From Salpingoeca rosetta (taxonomy: Eukaryota; Protista; Choanoflagellata): DNA of 64,000 nt. The translations under genes and the position numbers were made by a program. The notes under the pieces are model-generated. The model saw only the letters and a program-made list of their open reading frames with translations. It did not search any database and was not told the DNA's origin. Each line of letters starts with the position of its first letter. Positions within the stretch are counted from its first letter, which is position 1. Location of the stretch: NCBI GenBank assembly GCA_033442325.1, contig JAWQFM010000014.1, positions 952,435 to 1,016,434 of the forward strand, given 5' to 3'. Shown here piece after piece: positions 2,121 to 36,500 of this stretch.

Positions 2121-9409
<7,289 letters not shown>

Positions 9410-26202: not shown

Positions 26203-28003
26203 TCAGTTGTCGGCGTTGTTGTCGTTGTTGTTGTCACCGCCTTCGTCGTTGTCGTTGTTGTTGTCACCGCCTTCGTCGTCGTTGTTGTTGTTGTCACCAC
26301 CTTCCTGGTTACCCTCACCACCTTCCTCGTTGTTGTTCTCACCGCCTTCCTGGTTACCCTCACCACCTTCCTCGTTGTTGTTCTCACCACCTTCCTGGTT
26401 GTTCTCACCACCTTCGTCGTTGTTGTTGTTGTTCTCACCACCTTCGTCGTTGTTGTTCTCACCACCTTCCTGGTTGTTCTCACCACCTTCCTGGTTGTTG
26501 TTCTCACCGCCTTCCTGGTTACCCTCACCACCTTCCTGGTTGTTGTTCTCACCACCTTCACCACCTTCCTGGTTGTTGTTCTCACCGCCTTCCTGGTTAC
26601 CTTCACCACCTTCGTTGTTGTTGTTCTCACCGCCTTCCTGGTTACCTTCACCACCTTCGTTGTTGTTGTTCTCACCGCCTTCCTGGTTACCCTCACCACC
26701 TTCCTCGTTGTTGTTGTTGTTCTCACCACCTTCGTCGTTGTTGTTCTCACCACCTTCCTGGTTGTTCTCACCACCTTCCTGGTTGTTGTTCTCACCGCCT
26801 TCCTGGTTACCCTCACCACCTTCCTGGTTGTTGTTCTCACCACCTTCACCACCTTCCTGGTTGTTGTTCTCACCGCCTTCCTGGTTACCTTCACCACCTT
26901 CGTTGTTGTTGTTCTCACCGCCTTCCTGGTTACCTTCACCACCTTCGTTGTTGTTGTTCTCACCACCTTCCTGGTTACCCTCACCACCTTCACCACCTTC
27001 GTCGTTGTTGTTGTCACCACCTTCACCAACTTCACCCTCGTTGCTGGCCGTCCGAGCAATCACCTCCTGCGCCTGCTGCACGTGGCGAGTCAGCGCGTCC
27101 TGGTCTCGCATCAGCGCCACCGTGGCCTCGTCGTCTTGTTCGAGCAGCATCCCCGTGATCCGGCCCGCGTTGACCCGGTCGAGAATCTCCACGCGCGCAA
27201 ACAGCCGGTCGCCAAGGAACTGCCATCGCTCCTCCTTGCTCTTCCCCGCCAGCTGCTCCAGAATGTCCTCGGGAAGCGGTGCAAGCAACTCATCGTCGTG
27301 GCTGGCTGGCACAGCTGGTTCGTCGCCAGCATGCTCGTCATCATGCTCGCGGTTGGCATCCTCACCATTCGCTTGGCCCTCACCAGCTTCCTCACCTTCA
27401 CCTTCACCATCACCAGCTTCCTCTTCACCCTGTTCACCATCATTGGCACCATCACCACCATCAGCGTCGGCCTTGGATGCTGCCACGGCCGCAATCATCT
27501 GTTCCATCTCCTGCTTCTTCGCCTGCACGTTGGAGAAGTCCGGGTCGACGTCTGCACAGCGCGTGTATGCGTCCAGCGCGGCATTAAAGTCCTCCAGCCC
27601 TTCGTGTGCCTCTGCTTTGCGGAAGAGCGCCTTGACGTTTGCTGGGTCCTTGTTCAGCACAACAGCTGTGTCAGCCAACGCCTCCTCATATTGCTTCAGC
27701 TTCAGGCGGCACTCGGCGCGGTTGTTGTATCCGCCAAGGTTGTTGGCGTCCAGCTCAACGCAGCGCGTAAACGCGGCCACCGCTTCCTCAAACTTTGAGT
27801 CGTTGAAGCACGCAATGCCTTCCGCCCTGGCTGCCTTGTACTGCTCCGCAATGTCATCGTCATCGGGTGTGGCGAGCTCTCCTGTGCTGCTGGCGGGTGC
27901 AGGTACTTGCTCCCCCTTGTTGTCGCCAGACTCATTGCCGTTGCCCGTGCCGGTGTCATCGCTGTTGCCACCGTTGTTGTCGCCAGACTCGTCGTCGTCG
28001 TCG

Positions 28004-28049
<46 letters not shown>

Positions 28050-28887
28050 CGTCGTCGTTGTTGTTGTTGCTGCTGTCGCCACCTTCGTTACCCCCCTCGT
28101 TGCCATCGTCACCAGCATCAACGTCGGCAGGGGCAGGAGGCTCCACGATGCCAATTGTGACGGCTGTGAGTGTCGAGTGTTCGCTGACGGCATCGCCAAT
28201 TGCCGCACGCAGCGCGTCGCCGTCCGCTCGACTCACGCCCGTCACCCTGAACGTCGCGAGCCCAGGCACATGGAGGGGTGGGGGGATACATGTGAGCGAG
28301 TGAACGTGTACGTTCGTATGGAATAGTGAGCGTCAGCTCGATAGACACACACACACACACACATATGCGTTGAGTGGTGTTCAGGAGCGAGAAAGCAAAG
28401 TGCAGCCTTTGAGAACACAGGGCGAGAACGAAGAGAGGCAACTCACGTGACTGTCTTGAGGGTGGTGCTTGACATGATGGCCTTGCGAAGCCAGCTCGCA
28501 TCATCACTGTCACCGCACTTGGCGCCGGGTAGCCTGCACATGTGCGCGTATGTGTGTGCGTATGTGCGTGTGGTTGTTGTTGTGTGAATAAACAGGGGGG
28601 TGTAGAGGCGATCGACACAGAAGTGACATTCAAACAGGAGTAAACGGCGCACAGGTGTGGTCATAGATGCTTGTGATTACATACGTCAAGTGCTGGAGAT
28701 GAGGAGTGAAGAGAAGCAGCGTGGACACGCTGTCACGCACACTCAGATCGCCGTCCGTGCGAGAGAGATCGAGGTTGGAGAAGCTGCAGCAAGAAAGGAT
28801 TCAGGGTTTGTGTGTCGTTGTACGAGTGAGAATGGGAAAGTTGGCATGTCGATGCATTGTGTGTGTGTGTGTGGTGTGGTGTGGTGT

Positions 28888-28947
<60 letters not shown>

Positions 28948-31900
28948 CGTCGTCATGTGATTGTTGCATGCAGGCATTGAAAAAAGGAGGGACAAGCACA
29001 ACACATGAACCAAGCACACACACACACACACCCTCCCCCCCCCCACACACAACCCTCATGAATTCTACCAACCTGACAGAGGTGAGATGCTGGCTGGAGG
29101 AGAGGATGTTGACCGTGCTGACGAGCACTGGAAGCTCAACGTCAGCACCCACGTCGGCTCTGTGTGCACACAAGAGAGAAATACGGCACGAGAAAAACAA
29201 AACAGCCAATCGTGTGAGTACAAGTATCTATCTCCACGCTCTCACGATGGTGTTATGAAGACGCACACACACACACACACACACACACTAAGACGCACAA
29301 ACACTAAGACGCACAAACACTAAGACACACACACACACACACACACAACGATACATACGCATTCACACACACATACTGTACACACGATACATACGCATGC
29401 AAGCACACAAACACAAGATCGAGCACAAGCCCACGAATGAACGCACGAGAATTCTGTCAAGGCGGCATCCTGCGTGCGAAGCTGCTGCAGCGTAAACACG
29501 GCCTCTTGCGAGAGGCCTGGCAGGTTCTCAGGCGTCACATCCTCAACAGCAATGGCACCGAGCTGGTCGGCTGCATGCGTGTCCATCTGGCGGTTGCGAA
29601 GGCGGCAGATGTCACCGAGGGCCTCGTTCAGCTGCGTAATATCGTCAAACAGCTGCACGCGCTCACGCACCACTGTCTCCTGCTCCGTGAGATCAAAGGC
29701 GTGCATGCGATCCTCCAGCACAGCCTTCCTCATCGCCTCCCAGTCAATCACCATGGCCGCGCTGGCAACGTACATGTGCAGCTTGCCCGTGAGAGGCTTG
29801 AGGTCGGGCGGCGTGTACTCCAGCGAAGCGGGCGTGACGATGCCATCGTCGTCGTCGCCTCCACCGGCGCTGCCGGGATGGTGGCGGAACGTGAACAACG
29901 TGCGATGATCGCCCACAAAGGTGGCAGAGAACTCCGCCACGGCGAGCGCCAGCACGCTGTCCACGTTCTCGTGGAAGAACTCACGCACGGCTTGTGCGGT
30001 GTTGGCGATGAAAGTTGGGAAGCGGTGCACGTTCATGGGCGACGTGTCCTCCTGCAGGGCACTTTTGACAATGTCGGCCACGGCACCGGCGATTGTCCCA
30101 TCCCTCAGGTCGTTGACAACGGCCGCAAGCTCATCGCTCAACTCGCGGTGCAGCTGACGCGCCTGCGCCACGAGGGCGGTGGTGGCATCGATGCCGGCAG
30201 CGTCGCCTCGCGCGCCCTCACGCACACGGTCCTCCGCCTGCTGTAGACGCCTGACGATCAGCTCAAACACGCGCCTGTTGATGGTGGCGTCAATCTCACG
30301 CTGGCGCTCGCCAATCAGCTCCGCGCTGCGGTCGCACAGCAGCACGCGCAGCTCGGCCTCTGGTGTGGAGGCGAGCGGGGAAGTCGCGTTGGTGGCGTCG
30401 AGACCGTTCAGCGTCTGCCTGGAGGCGGTGCACGCGTCGGGGACCGGGGTGGTGAAGTATGGTGACAGCTCCATGACGCGCGCACGCTTCGCCATGCACA
30501 GCTTGTGGGCGGTGTGGTAGGCACGGCCCACCCACAGGCGCATGTGGTCGCTGTCGTACACACGCTTGAGTGCGGCCAGGAACGCGGTGCGTCCAATGCG
30601 GCCGTTGAGCTCGTCAAACTGCTGCAGCCTGTCCGTGAGCTGCTCTTCCTGGGCGAGTGCGGGGGCGTATGCGGTGTGATCTGCCACGTCAGGTGTACGT
30701 GGGCTCGGCACGACAACAAAGCCGTTGCCAAACGCGTGCAGTAGATCGGCGTCAACCAGGGCACGCGCGTTTTCCTCTGGCCGCACGCCATTGTCCATGA
30801 GTGTCATGACGAGGGTTGCAGTCTCAAAGAGATGTGGGAACTTGTCTCCCAACTCGCCAATGGCCAGCACGTTGTTGAGCAGCGTGCCTGCGCGTGCCAG
30901 CACAATCGCGTGCAGGTTGTTCTGTGCCAACATCCTCTCACGAATCACCCTGTAGGTGTGCACGCGAACATGTTGTGTGTTTGTGCGTGTGTGCGTGTGT
31001 GCATGAGTGTGTATGAGTGTGTGCATGTGTGTATGAGTGTGTATGAGTGTGTATGGGTGTGTGTGTATGTAAGTGTGGGGTCAATGCTGTGAGGAACGAT
31101 GGTGACAGTGCAAGGGCAACACAGCAAACAAGGGAAACAAAATGAACAGCGAAGTGATTGCACACTCATACGAGCAAGGTGACGCACACAACACATACAC
31201 ATACGCACACAACACACACATACGCACACACACACACAATTGTACACACGCACACACGCACATGCACACTCATGAACACACACACACACACACTCACGTG
31301 ATGTCTGTGGCGAGTGATGGCGGGAGGACGACGCGACCAGGAATGTCGTAGGCGTTGATGCGCGGGAAGTGTGGTTGGGTAAGGCGGATGACAATCTCGA
31401 CATCGGTCGTGGCGTGCGGGTCAGTGCCCTGCAAGCGTGCGGCAAGGGCATCAGCACGGGCCTTGGCGCTCTCCTTGATGTGGTTCCATGGCACGAGGTC
31501 TCCAGTCACGCCTGCCTGCTGCTGGCCAGTTGGACCGCCACCGAACACGAGCGTGTCCAGAGCCACCTCCGTGCCGTCGGAACACGTGCGCTGCGTGATG
31601 TGCGGCAGCTGCATGGGGCCTGGGTGGAACTCGACCACAATGGTGGCGCGCGTGTTGTCGGGAAGAATGGGGATGTCGATGATGCGGTCGAGCAGCGAGG
31701 ACGCGCCGTCGCGCTGGCTGGCGGAGACCCCAAACTTGGTCTCAGGCAAGGCGGGCAAGGTGCCGTTCTCGAGGAGCTGCTGCACGTGTGGCAGGGAGAA
31801 GTCGGAGATGCCCTGGGGACGGGCGGCATCCGGCGCTTTGCTCACGTGGCGCTGCAAGGCGGCGAGCTCTTCCTTCTCGAGCGGCACTCCCCCCGTCAAT

Positions 31901-32120
31901 GGCTCTCCCGTGAAGAAGGACCTCAGGGGCTCATCGCGCCCAACCGTGGTCGCGTTGTCTGCCGTTAGCGTGCGTGTGCGGGTGTGCATTTTTGGTGAGG
32001 AGAAAGAAAGCAAACACAGACAGGAGAGAGTGTGTGATGATGTGTTGATTGTTGTTGGTGTGCAAGGTGTTGTTGTTGTCATCAATGCTGCAAAGCGGTC
32101 CATCAAGCATCAGGAGCAAC

Positions 32121-32165
<45 letters not shown>

Positions 32166-32506
32166 GTCAGGACAAAATTGGTGTGTCACATCATGTCACA
32201 TCACATCAAGTCAAGCCATACACACGAGCCATGGCGAGGGAAATGTGTCGACAAAACTCACAGCAGAAGTTGTCGTGGGCCCGCACCAGGTTGGCACAGT
32301 TCTGTTGTTGCGTGTCCGTGTGTGTGTGTGTATGCGTATGTGAGTGAGTCAAGAAAGATGAACACAAGGGAACATGGAGGCATGAAGACATAAGCCAGAA
32401 GAATATGGGATGAGGCCAATGCCATGGTGTGCACCAAAACACACACCAGGGGCTCGCCTGTCCGGGGATCCAGGTTGCACCCGAAAAAGTTGGCGAAGGC
32501 GGGCAT
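26203..32506 (-). CDS. Dynamin-like pseudo-GTPase + helical stalk + LRR-like repeats + TPR + MLLE(PABC) + Gly/Glu/Asn repeat tail
   Basis: Exons ~31959-31298, ~30950-29449, ~29158-29072, ~28784-28686, ~28533-28448 and ~28247-26203 join in frame at GT-AG sites. Dynamin-like G1 region LPETKFGVSASQRDGASSLL, IVIRLTQPHFPRINAYDIPG, G4 TLMD. TPR ~27500-27850 (YNNRAECRLKL..KALFRKAEA). MLLE ~27060-27260 (QFLGDRLF..AGRITGMLLE). The 5' exons and the start codon (32506) are uncertain. Confidence 0.72.
26206..27030 (-). repeat. Coding minisatellite (EGGENNN(Q/N/D) and EGGEGNQ units) with a 288-nt higher-order duplication
   Basis: Units of 21-30 nt; the sequence at 26413 recurs near-identically at 26701 (offset 288 nt = 96 aa). 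Confidence 0.9.
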
Positions 32507-33593
32507 GTCGGCGTTGACGGATGGCAATCGAATGAAGCGACGCCGTGGGCGGTGATTGTAGGGGGTGTTGGCGTTTGTGTCCTTGCTTGCTTGGTGGTGG
32601 TGGAAGCGATATCAGTGCTGATGTGGATCAGGTGGCGTGAGATATGAGATGTGATGATAATGTGAGGCTTTCTTCGTTCTTGCGGTGTGCTTTGTTCTTC
32701 GGTGTTGGGGAAAATGGACGTCAGGACAGAGCGAGAGCGCGGTGCTGTGCAAAATGGCTTTGTCCACGCCCGCTTGCGCCCACGCTCAGACGCCTGACGT
32801 CTCACTGACTGGCTGGCTGGCTTGCTTGCTTTGCGGGGTTGGTCGCAACCACAACATCATGACTCATGCTGCGACGATGAGGATGACACAACAATTGGTG
32901 GAAAATGCCAAGTCAGCGTTTTTTCCATGACTGCGGCTGTGTGACATGACAGACTGCTGCTGTGGCGTGCCCTTGCCCTTGCTTGCTTGGCATGTCCCAT
33001 GCTCTGCTGCCTCCCTTCCTGACTCTCGACCCTCAACGTGTACACATCACACGTGGCATGTCACACATCATTTGGTGACGTGCAAGTGTGTGACGGAAAT
33101 TTTTCAGACCTTCGGCGTCAAGTGACAACTGTGCATGCATGTGTGTGTTGGCTGTTGCTGATGGATAGATATGTCTTTGTCGAGGACACAAGAGGACACC
33201 AGACCGGACATCAACAAAGCCATCGTGGTCATCAAGTCACGGCATCACACACACACACACAGTCACAATCGTCGTAGTCGCACTCATCACAAGACACACA
33301 CGTGCACATCACATTGGACATGGCATGCAACGCCATGCAATGCAACGGACGCCAGCAATATACCCGCAACAGCAACGCACCAACTGAAATGAAAGCCCAA
33401 ACGCAGACAACGGGGCTTCTTCGCGCAAGCAAGATAAGATAGTCACTGCCTTGCACGAGTTCAAAAATAAAATCACACATCAAGTACAATATGCAACGCT
33501 CAGAACGAGGGAGCGCCGCAGGCACACACACACATACACACACACACGCACGCGCATCTTTGGAAGCAAGGGCTGCCTCTTGGATGGCAGCGC

Positions 33594-36500
33594 CTACTCT
33601 TCCTTGTCAGCCTTGACTTGGTCGCTCTGGTTGCCACTCTCAGCAGCAGCATCAGCCCCCTGCTCTTCAGCAGCTGCGTCGCCGTCAGTCGAGGCATCGC
33701 CACTCTCCTCTTCCTGCTTCTTGTCCTCCTCCTGTGCCTCTTCCTGCTCCTTCTCCTGCTCCTTCTCCTGCTCATCTGCCGCGGGCTCGGCCTGCTCGTC
33801 CTCGTCACCAGCAGCTGCCTCCTCCTCCTCCTGCTGCTCATTCGTCTCCTCCTCCTCCTTCGCGGGCTCCTCCGCCTCTTCCTCCGCGGTCGTGTCATCA
33901 CCACCAGCCATCTCCTCGCTTGCCTCAGTCTCGGCAGGCTCCTCCTCTTGCGGCTTCTCTTCAGTCTCCTCAGCCGGCTTATTCTCCTTCTGCGCCGCCG
34001 CCTCCTGAGCCTCTGGTTCAGCTGCCTCATCCTCCTTCTCTGCCTCTGCCGTTTCCGCAGCGGGCTCTTCGCTCTCGCCCTCTGGCTGCTGCTCTGGCGC
34101 ATCCTCGCCTGCATTCTCCTCTGCATCAGCAGGGCTGCTGTCATCCTCCGTCTGCTTCTCTTCCTCCTCTGCGGCGGGCTCGTCGACTGCCTCTTCTGCC
34201 TCCTCTTCCTCGGACGGCTTCTGGTCTTCTTGCTCCTCATCTTCCGCGGCATCTTCAGCCTTCTCCTCAGGCTCAGCCTCCGTCTTCTCTTCCTCCTCAG
34301 CAACAGCATCGGCTGGCGCCCCTTCCTCCTTGTCCTCCTCCTCCCCGGCTGCATCCTCGTCCTTCTTCTCCGCTTCCTCGGTCACTGCTTCGACCTCATC
34401 CGGCTTGTCGCTGTCGGCGCCGTCAGCAGGGGCAGCGGCCTCTGCCTGCTCCCCCTCCTGCTGCTGTTCCTCATCCGCAGCAAGTGTTTCCTCGCCCGCC
34501 TCCTCGTTCTTGTCTTCCGTCGTCTCCTGTTCCTCGCCCTCAGGCTCCGCTGCCTCTGGTTCTGCCTCTGCCTCCTCTTCTTCCTTCTCCCCCTTCTCCT
34601 CTTCAGCGTCTGCTGCCTCATCCACATTGTCTTCCTCTTCTCCAGCTGTGGTCTCCTTCTCCTCCGCCTCACCCTCTTCGGTTGCCTCCTCATTCTTCTC
34701 TTCTTCTTCCACTTGCTCTTCTTCTTCCACTTGCTCTTGCTGCTCTTCATTGCCGCTGCTCTCGCCACTCTCGATGTCGTCCTCCTTCTCTTTGAGCAGC
34801 TTGATGCCCTTGTACAGCGCGCAGATGATCTCCGCCTCCGTGATGCAGAAGCGCGCGCGTGGCGAGATGTCGCACACACCGCCCTCGCCAATCGGCGTGT
34901 GTTCTCCACCAATCCCGCGCACACTCAGCCCAAGCGGCTTGCACACCTCCTTCGCCTTGGCATCTGTCCCGTCAGCCGTCAGCTTCGGAAGCCCAATGTG
35001 CACGCTCGCGCGCATCCCCGTGCCCAGGTTCGTCGGGCAGCTCGTCACAACGCCGTAGTCTGGCGACATGGCAAACGACAGGCCCTCAATCCCGCTCACA
35101 ACATCAAGCGCCGTCTTGAGCCGGTCAAACACGTCGTTCAGCACCGTGCCCTTCTTCATGCACATGATGCGCAGGTGGTCCTCCTCGCCAACCCAGATCA
35201 CAAACCCGCGGTCCTCAGACACGTAGCACCCGCGCCCGTACGGCCAGTCAGACGCAATGCCCGCGCTCGCCAGGTACGGGTCTGCCGCCATGTCCTTGAA
35301 CATGATGTGGTCCGCCACCAGCTGCTTGTACTCCTCGTCGCTGATCTTGTCCGGGTGCCCGGGCGTCAGCGAGTTGTACCCGCCCCCGTACTCGGGCATT
35401 GCCTTGAGCTTCTCAAACGCCTCGCACATCTGTGTGCCATGTGTGCCATGTGCGTGCGATGTGAGTGATGTGTGAGCGAGCGAGGAAGAGAGTGGGGTGT
35501 GTGCGATGTGAGTGATGTGTGAGCGAGCGAGGAAGAGAGTGGGGTGGGGGCGAGGTGAGGCAGTGAGGGCTCACGCATCAGGGTATGAACGCACACGCAT
35601 ACACATGCACACACACATGCACACACACACACACACACCTTCTTCTCGAGGCTGACGCGGTCCTCCTGCGTCATGGCGCCTGGCAGTGGGAAGTCAGCAA
35701 GGTTGCGTCCAACGCGCACGCGCATGCTCAGGGCTGGCAGCCCAAGTGCCGCAAGGTCCAGCTTGCCGCCCTCAGGAAGGCCCTCAACCCCAGACAGGTC
35801 CCAGCTGTTCACGTGCTTGGCATCCTCGGCAACGCCGTGGTAGTCCGCAATCACCTTGCTGAAGAACGGCTTGAACCGGTCGTAGTCCGCGGGCTGCATG
35901 GCGTCTGTGTCGTGCCGTTGTGCACGTGCGAATGTGTGTGTGTGTGTGTGTGTGCGTGTGCATATGTGTGTGTATGTGCATGTGCGTGTGTGAATGCGTG
36001 TGTACGTGTGTGTGAATGCGCGCGCGTGTGTGTGAGCGAGTATGTAAAGGAAAGAACGCATGAACACGTAGGCGAGAGAGAGAATGTGTGTGTGTGTGTT
36101 TGTGTGTTTGTGTGTGTTGAGGCATACGCAACACCAACCGAGCAACATCACGGCCAACGCAAGCCCAAAACACGCAGCAGCAAAATAACAAAGCATGGCT
36201 GCGCGCGCACGGTGTTGTCGCATCTACTCACAGCAGCCCATGGAGGAGTCTGGGTTCTCCAGACCGCTGCGGCAGCACTGCACCAGACCGCGCTGTTGGT
36301 CCTTGTCGAGTTCCATAAAGTACGCAATGTCAAAGTGCTTGGCCATGCGGTTCTCAGGGTTGGACTCGCGAATCTGGTTGATCTTCAGGTTGACGTTGTA
36401 AGCGTGGAGAAACGCCGGCTGCTCGTCCTGCTTGTCGGCAGCATCCTCGCCCTTGGGCTGCTCTTCCCCTGAGGCGGTGGCGGTGGCGGGCGCCGTCTGC

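Follow-up and report, generated by a model that had tools for sequence, protein, structure and literature searches.

A 64,000-nucleotide stretch of the choanoflagellate Salpingoeca rosetta genome (contig JAWQFM010000014.1, positions 952,435 to 1,016,434; hereafter the window) carries a gene predicted to encode a dynamin-superfamily pseudoenzyme of 1526 residues, in which a dynamin-type G domain that has, by strong inference from its sequence, lost canonical GTPase chemistry is followed by a helical stalk, leucine-rich repeat-like (LRR-like) units, a tetratricopeptide repeat (TPR) domain and an MLLE domain. The domain combination is real and apparently undescribed: a preliminary description of this DNA had known of no protein with this architecture, and none was found in protein, ESM Atlas or literature searches, with nothing relevant in the literature on the annotated S. 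rosetta paralog PTSG_04903, on dynamin plus LRR in choanoflagellates, or on MLLE plus TPR. Other proteins joining TPR to MLLE were not seen, with generic TPR proteins only among the matches listed and TPR clusters only in the Atlas. The favoured reading as a whole, that of an eight-exon pseudo-dynamin with a TPR–MLLE tail acting as a scaffold or adaptor, is given a probability of roughly 0.55; the candidate pseudoenzyme, seemingly unprecedented in its combination of domains, is considered of moderate interest until its function is known.

The gene lies on the minus strand at 32506-26203, where eight coding exons (4581 nt; splice sites placed by hand and checked by script) yield an open frame with a single terminal stop, and each of the seven introns is GT-AG and preserves the frame. 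Three separately called open reading frames (ORFs; 31294-32106, 29320-31026 and 26203-28269) are thereby fused through canonical introns into one gene, as had been proposed for a protein of 1500-1600 residues; the in-frame joining was also foreseen, with six exons counted where eight are found. Exon order and every intron phase match PTSG_04903, whose exon map, rebuilt from its locus, where the gene spans 4786 nt of GL832965.1, is 51/40/700/1632/87/105/157 nt (phases 0,0,1,2,2,2,2) against 60/40/661/1503/87/99/87/2044 nt here; the LRR region of the paralog has one intron and one exon fewer, because an extra intron here splits the counterpart of the paralog's last exon. The product is colinear with transcript-derived homologs from Met1 to the last LRR-like unit, including the two tiny 5' and three small 3' exons. 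The window DNA is eukaryotic in character, with ~56% G+C and introns rich in (CA)n; in those of this gene (CA)n/(GT)n microsatellite predominates, as at 28860-28960, 30972-31290 and 32125-32180.

Table 1. Exons, motifs and domains of the pseudo-dynamin gene, with positions in the window.
Feature	Position	Strand	Size and phase	Remarks
Coding exon 1	32447..32506	-	60 nt, phase 0-0	ATG at 32506; MPAFANFFGCNLDPRTGEPL; GT donor after 32447; colinear exon 1 of PTSG_04903 is 51 nt, ending ...GQPL
Coding exon 2	32262..32301	-	40 nt, phase 0-1	NCANLVRAHDNFC; AG/GT sites; paralog exon 2 is 40 nt with identical phase
Coding exon 3	31298..31958	-	661 nt	Remaining N-terminal module and first half of G domain (G1, switch I, G3)
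G1/P-loop	31699..31722	-		ASQRDGAS (dynamin GSQSSGKS), first Gly and Lys lost; profile aligns the segment to the Vps1 P-loop
Switch I	31642..31665	-		LPDNTRAT, shortened; 'LPqn....TRvP' vs Vps1 'LPRGqgivTRRP'
G3	31336..31347	-		DIPG, DxxG kept
Coding exon 4	29447..30949	-	1503 nt	Second half of G domain, helical stalk with beta-hairpin tip, GED-like last helix
G4	30793..30804	-		TLMD (dynamin TKLD; relatives TRxD), basic residue lost, Asp kept
GED-like helix	29608..29670	-		VRERVQLFDDITQLNEALGDI; in model helix 424-463, pLDDT ~90; family-conserved LDLTE-E-VV-ER motif just before
Coding exon 5	29073..29159	-	87 nt, phase 2-2	LRR-like unit; 87-nt paralog exon, same place and phase
Coding exon 6	28685..28783	-	99 nt, phase 2-2	LRR-like unit; 105-nt paralog exon, same place and phase
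Coding exon 7	28447..28533	-	87 nt, phase 2-2	LRR-like unit; in the paralog the unit belongs to the last exon
Coding exon 8	26203..28246	-	2044 nt including stop (26203-26205)	Last LRR-like unit, linker, TPR, linker, MLLE, repeat tail; one open frame
Last LRR-like unit	28144..28246	-		VTGVSRADGDALRAAIGDAVSEHSTLTAVTIG; aligns to C-termini of P0004 (…ITIEGVADAEAVRAALMSLKDQHSSLKNVDVK*) and P0002
Acidic linker	27859..28143	-		N/D/G-rich; includes (AAC)22 poly-Asn microsatellite at 28003-28069
Three-TPR domain	27514..27858	-		Residues 976-1090; Hsp70/Hsp90 co-chaperone class; Pfam TPR_1 6.9e-14, 3 stretches
MLLE (PABC) domain	27064..27303	-		PF00658; residues 1161-1240; Pfam 5e-18, 65.3 bits vs cut-off 27
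Tail	26206..27063	-	last 286 residues	E/G/N-rich, acidic, net charge -83; nested tandem DNA repeats

Assembly word shares, the colinearity of the homologs and the matching exon map of the paralog agree in showing these exons as one expressed gene. Across the intron-containing region 28200-32600, 0.51-0.56 of sampled words are present in assemblies from four studies, where a share of 0.558 is predicted for an exon-only transcript with a 5' untranslated region of at least 94 nt and one of 0.516 if the small LRR exons are omitted. The point at which the LRR-like array passes into the tail needs no splice, with the last unit, linker, TPR and MLLE in one exon; the relatives stop directly after the last LRR unit, whereas here the frame stays open for ~650 more codons in the same exon, making this, by sequence comparison, the only family member found whose last exon runs past the usual stop position. 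That the relatives end exactly where the extension starts, and that 95 low-complexity residues, including a microsatellite-encoded tract, stand between the two parts, could be explained by two products: the TPR–MLLE part might arise, mainly or additionally, from an internal promoter or start, or the dynamin–LRR mRNA might end earlier, leaving the fusion minor or absent. This is judged quite improbable: the last LRR unit and everything through the MLLE domain share one exon and one frame, which meets no stop for 680 codons, so that a dynamin–LRR-only product would need a stop where the frame is open; intron-free, transcript-like assemblies from the same studies contain 0.89-0.98 of the words over the whole of 26995-28246 (last LRR unit, linker and TPR, into the MLLE domain); and no separate TPR–MLLE protein was among the matches listed in a search of proteins of 378-1204 residues.

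Relatives of this protein are few. When exon 4 (500 residues) was run by phmmer against all 1.84 billion representative proteins, only five related clusters emerged: PTSG_04903 of S. rosetta itself (P0001; 923 residues, 35% identity, automatically named 'Dynamin N-terminal domain-containing protein'), a complete ORF from the transcriptome of Microstomoeca roanoka (P0002), a protein of Barroeca monosierra (P0005), and two environmental or run-assembly proteins (P0003 and P0004). Identities between members are 21-35%, databases label the family only as hypothetical or 'Dynamin N-terminal domain-containing', and all identifiable members are choanoflagellate; on present sequences this is a dynamin-superfamily branch of very few members. 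A common layout is seen: a conserved N-terminal module of ~55 residues and the G domain are followed by a dynamin/Mx-like helical stalk and then, towards the C-terminus, by a short run of ~29-residue LRR-like units; this gene shares with PTSG_04903, P0002 and P0005 the N-terminal module, a P-loop lacking Lys, the LRR-like units, and the stalk motifs D[TA]S.VK..RF, LFTF and LDLTE.E.V..ER, and differs from them in some 650 extra residues (TPR, MLLE and repeats). Exon 3 alone is 32-38% identical to P0001, P0002 and P0005 by tblastn. In P0005 the LRR region, soon after it begins, gives way to a C-terminal SMC_N/AAA_21 segment (residues ~640-883; 3e-29), most likely a chimeric gene model and not a real fusion. 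PTSG_04903 is present in both protein collections searched, and the product of this gene was not among the matches listed from either, at any protein length allowed.

Assignment to the dynamin superfamily runs through this family, because the gene's own G-domain pieces give no Pfam or PDB sequence match by themselves. The Dynamin_N gathering score of 27 bits is passed by P0001 (29.3) and P0002 (35.9), and a family profile that includes the two large exons of the window retrieves Vps1 (3e-9) and then DRP1A, dynamin-1/3, MxA, Drp1 and OPA1/Mgm1, with more than 30 dynamin-family chains. Language-model features of exon 3 fall to Dynamin_N clusters in the ESM Atlas (score 0.94; 187/256 features shared). 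An AlphaFold2 model of the paralog (mean predicted local distance difference test, pLDDT, 65.7) was matched by Foldseek, in alignments of 700-800 columns with E-values of 1e-12 to 1e-9, to full-length dynamin-1, Drp1, MxA/MxB and OPA1. The model of exon 4 (pLDDT 72.6; predicted template modelling score 0.55) has Drp1, dynamin-1 and MxA as its top Foldseek matches over ~470-520 columns (E 3e-5 to 1e-3); among ESM Atlas shapes it lies closest to Mx clusters, at a template modelling (TM) score of 0.39. The Dynamin_M and GED models of Pfam match neither the window protein nor the paralogs. Profile, language-model features and predicted fold agree with the dynamin-like G domain of the preliminary description: the G domain is firmly of dynamin type, and the model matches suggest, with moderate confidence and at low TM-scores, that the stalk with its GED-like helix is dynamin-like too. 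The tip of the modelled stalk (exon 4 model residues ~605-635, window ~29800-29900) carries a beta-hairpin (LFTFRHH ... SLEYTP) with a Gly/Asp-rich loop, its flanks conserved across the family and its loop variable, which on our reading lies at about the position of the PH domain of dynamin and the L4 loop of Mx.

The nucleotide-binding motifs of the G domain were found exactly where the preliminary description had placed them (31696-31722, ASQRDGASS; 31336-31347, DIPG; 30793-30804, TLMD), and its claim that the Lys of G1 and of G4 are lost is borne out by the alignment; a dead P-loop is, however, not special to this gene. At G1, where dynamin has GSQSSGKSS, this protein reads SASQRDGASS, P0001 GNQLDGVST, P0002 GDQGDGVSS and P0005 GQQGDGASS, with P0004 unrecognisable. 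The P-loop Lys is thus absent from every family member, the family pattern being G-x-Q-x-D-G-[VA]-S-[ST], and the loss is therefore old and family-wide. G3 (DxxG) is DIPG here, DVPG in P0001, DLPG in P0002 and P0005, and LVPG, with its Asp lost, in P0004; G4 (TKLD) is TLMD here, TRVD in P0001 and TRAD in P0002 and P0005. The TRxD of G4 and the first P-loop Gly are accordingly kept in PTSG_04903, P0002 and P0005 and lost in this paralog, the most degenerate at G1 among members with a recognisable G1. The Thr of switch I (NTRAT) aligns with that of dynamin and Vps1 'TRRP', in a loop four residues shorter.

An atypical active GTPase, in which nucleotide is bound and perhaps hydrolysed through a non-canonical P-loop and the protein works as a mechano-enzyme or switch, would fit a family most of whose members keep the switch-I Thr, the G3 DxPG and the G4 Asp, and the conservation of the altered P-loop itself suggests constraint. 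This is nevertheless held to be improbable, since the invariant Lys is missing from all members and the first Gly and the basic G4 residue are also gone here. The top sequence match in the PDB is moreover the K-to-A P-loop mutant of Vps1 (6vjf), because its P-loop GSQSSGASS reads like that of the family; such mutants are catalytically dead.

Between stalk and tail stand the LRR-like units, of 29, 33 and 29 residues on one exon each (87/99/87 nt, all phase 2-2). Their symmetric exons would permit gain, loss or skipping without a break of frame; such exons lie at 28447-29159 here and at 6824-7188 of the paralog locus L001 (87/105 nt). The one-exon-per-repeat organisation claimed earlier stands, and the LRR identity remains without support from Pfam: the RNI-like pattern, the one-exon units, weak profile matches and a paralog model with four strand-helix repeats at residues 805-922 (pLDDT ~55-69) together hint at an LRR fold. 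At the other end of the protein, the conserved N-terminal module (D-P-x-T-G-E-x-L ... D-G-x-x-Y-N-A; modelled at pLDDT 45-62) resembles a U-box by eye, a reading that was rejected, as no U-box match was found in Pfam at E 10, among the PDB profile matches or in the Atlas.

A tripartite order of N-terminal module, oligomerising NTPase-like core and C-terminal LRR-like units recalls the NLR immune receptors, and an NLR-like sensor built on a dynamin chassis can be envisaged, in which a pathogen or danger ligand is sensed at the LRR-like end, oligomerisation falls to the stalk rather than to a NACHT domain, and the TPR–MLLE part is the effector arm, for example sequestering PAM2-bearing translation factors or chaperones, with other effector ends on paralogs. 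Such a sensor would suit the LRR units on symmetric phase 2-2 exons whose number varies between paralogs, the lineage restriction and fast divergence of the family (21-35% identity), and the presence in the same superfamily of Mx proteins, which are antiviral. Against it, the LRR array is very short (~4-5 units) and lacks Pfam support, the supposed N-terminal 'U-box' effector is unsupported by any test, and the features fit an ordinary scaffold equally well; no NACHT or NB-ARC STAND NTPase core was found by Pfam or the family profile, the core being dynamin-like. An immune sensor is compatible with the scaffold reading and is regarded as a possible, if rather unlikely, extension of it. Its most developed form, considered unlikely, is a choanoflagellate class of intracellular sensors with a nucleotide-dead dynamin/Mx-like stalk where NLRs have their STAND NTPase: a pathogen or stress ligand would be recognised by the LRR-like end, the stalk would assemble, and in this paralog chaperones, along with translation and decay factors bearing PAM2, would be captured by the TPR–MLLE tail, so that translation is shut down or redirected; if true, this would be a new receptor–effector logic joining Mx-type and NLR-type immunity.

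The modules that set this paralog apart are the better defined part of the C-terminal half, and both had been recognised from the letters. The TPR domain, with its three Pfam stretches, aligns end to end with SPAG1 TPR3 and the TPR domains of Sti1 (three motifs plus a capping helix), its nearest solved relatives being SPAG1 TPR3 (1e-33 over the whole chain), Sti1/Hop, TOM70, RPAP3, PP5 and CHIP. In the alignment to SPAG1 TPR3, and with our own assignment of clamp positions, the carboxylate clamp reads R-I-N-K-R against K-N-N-K-R, the first Lys-to-Arg change being conservative; binding of EEVD tails is on this sequence plausible but not assured. The MLLE match spans profile positions 2-66 of 66, carries the signature RITGMLLE at 27139-27162, and extends in the PDB to the MLLE domains of PABPC1 (1e-7), UBR5 (4e-7) and Rrm4 (3e-4). 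To our knowledge, poly(A)-binding proteins, UBR5 and fungal Rrm4 account for nearly all MLLE domains described so far. All segments of the protein are net acidic, and it contains no transmembrane segment, PH domain or basic patch; nothing in the sequence points to the membrane link suggested earlier. No internal PAM2 or EEVD motif, which might have indicated autoinhibition, is present in the protein. The DNA of the tail has a period of 288 nt in 2.6 copies with 95% matches, and sub-periods of 45 and 120 nt (Tandem Repeats Finder); this young array at 26214-27024 and the (AAC)22 tract are both likely to vary in length between isolates.

Degenerate motifs and a repetitive tail might mark a young drifting duplicate of no specific function, its losses and repeats arising from relaxed constraint after a chance fusion. 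The gene is indeed the most degenerate member at both G1 and G4, no ortholog above 35% identity was found in other choanoflagellates, and 95% identical 288-nt copies and a poly-Asn microsatellite lie within the ORF; yet the eight exons preserve an unbroken 4.6-kb ORF with canonical splice sites throughout, the gene is present in transcript-like assemblies from four studies, and the TPR and MLLE domains score far above Pfam thresholds with their signature residues kept. A functionless duplicate is thus considered the least probable of the readings weighed here.

Several observations count against the scaffold reading. The window's own G-domain pieces, taken alone, have no sequence match in Pfam or the PDB, and the structural models are of moderate confidence (pLDDT 66 and 73) with low TM-scores (0.2-0.4), a level to be expected when alignments are shallow and the proteins long, helical and hinged. 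The LRR-like units match no Pfam LRR model even at E 10, and the family profile reaches LRR proteins weakly (tropomodulin 0.0035; RNase inhibitor 0.09-0.5). The replacement of the first-repeat clamp Asn by Ile makes EEVD binding uncertain, and with the switch-I Thr, G3 and the G4 Asp in place some nucleotide binding may remain. Transcript support for the splice junctions is indirect, resting on assembly word shares, and the gene's own protein was absent from the representative library of 1.84 billion, from the family-profile matches listed and from a search with the ELSPYFTT region.

Elsewhere in the 64-kb window, no further paralog was found by local tblastn. The upstream neighbour on the same strand (33594-35429, minus) encodes an ATP:guanido phosphotransferase catalytic domain of the arginine/creatine-kinase type (Pfam 3.4e-53), followed by a Glu-rich acidic tail of ~390 residues; its N-terminal domain must sit in upstream exons.

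The scaffold function and the antiviral analogy with Mx are drawn from domain identities, and under the favoured scaffold reading the parts of the protein would combine as follows. The G domain would no longer act as a canonical GTPase, leaving a nucleotide-independent scaffold or adaptor; the stalk would supply self-association; the LRR-like end would bind a protein target; and a flexible acidic tail would present, in this paralog alone, two peptide-docking modules. Of these, the TPR domain may recruit the EEVD tails of Hsp70/Hsp90 and the MLLE domain may recruit proteins with PAM2 motifs, a class that includes eRF3, PAIP, PAN3, Tob and ataxin-2, so that chaperones and the machinery of translation and mRNA decay might be brought to a target held by the LRR units or stalk. 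An MLLE domain beside a chaperone-type TPR on a dynamin-like scaffold predicts that a self-assembling scaffold, Hsp70/Hsp90 and the PAM2 network are physically connected, a specific prediction open to direct tests by tagging, knockout and pull-downs, S. rosetta being genetically tractable. Choanoflagellates are the closest living relatives of animals, and a putatively dead G domain with an LRR-like end occurs in the sister group in which the origins of animal innate-immunity and signalling architectures are traced.

Pseudoenzymes of the dynamin family are only starting to be recognised, and one precedent was found in Mmc1, a fungal mitochondrial pseudoenzyme resembling dynamin-related proteins (DRPs), which self-associates into large assemblies and has been proposed to act as a scaffold (10.1101/2023.10.03.560745). 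Mmc1 is likewise a distant dynamin relative without key residues for GTP binding and hydrolysis (10.1101/2023.10.03.560745), and as a self-associating pseudoenzyme it supports the scaffold part of the proposal. It differs in being a protein of the inner mitochondrial membrane of fungi with MICOS as its partner, and is not described there with LRR, TPR or MLLE domains; no sequence relationship to the choanoflagellate family was seen in the profile searches made.

With the classical DRPs (dynamin-1, Drp1/Dnm1, Vps1, MxA/MxB) the protein shares the G-domain profile, the long helical stalk after the G domain and the GED-like last helix, with a small beta-hairpin as its stalk-tip insertion, at about the place that we assign to the PH domain in dynamin and the L4 loop in Mx; unlike them, it lacks a GKS P-loop, TKxD and any PH domain or basic membrane-binding loop, its switch I is shorter, and it carries the additional LRR-like, TPR and MLLE modules. 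Any likeness to NLR/STAND receptors is one of domain logic only, without a NACHT/NB-ARC domain. PABPC1, UBR5/HYD and Ustilago Rrm4 share the MLLE domain with its KITGMLLE-type signature (~35-40% identity to the PABPC1 MLLE); the host protein here has neither RRMs nor a HECT domain, and its MLLE, near the end of a dynamin-like chain, is flanked on both sides by acidic sequence of low complexity. The three-repeat TPR subclass, finally, is that of SPAG1, RPAP3, Sti1/Hop, TOM70, PP5 and CHIP, with the clamp residues Asn, Lys and Arg kept; compared with these co-chaperones, the first clamp Asn is Ile, and the domain is borne on an entirely different protein.

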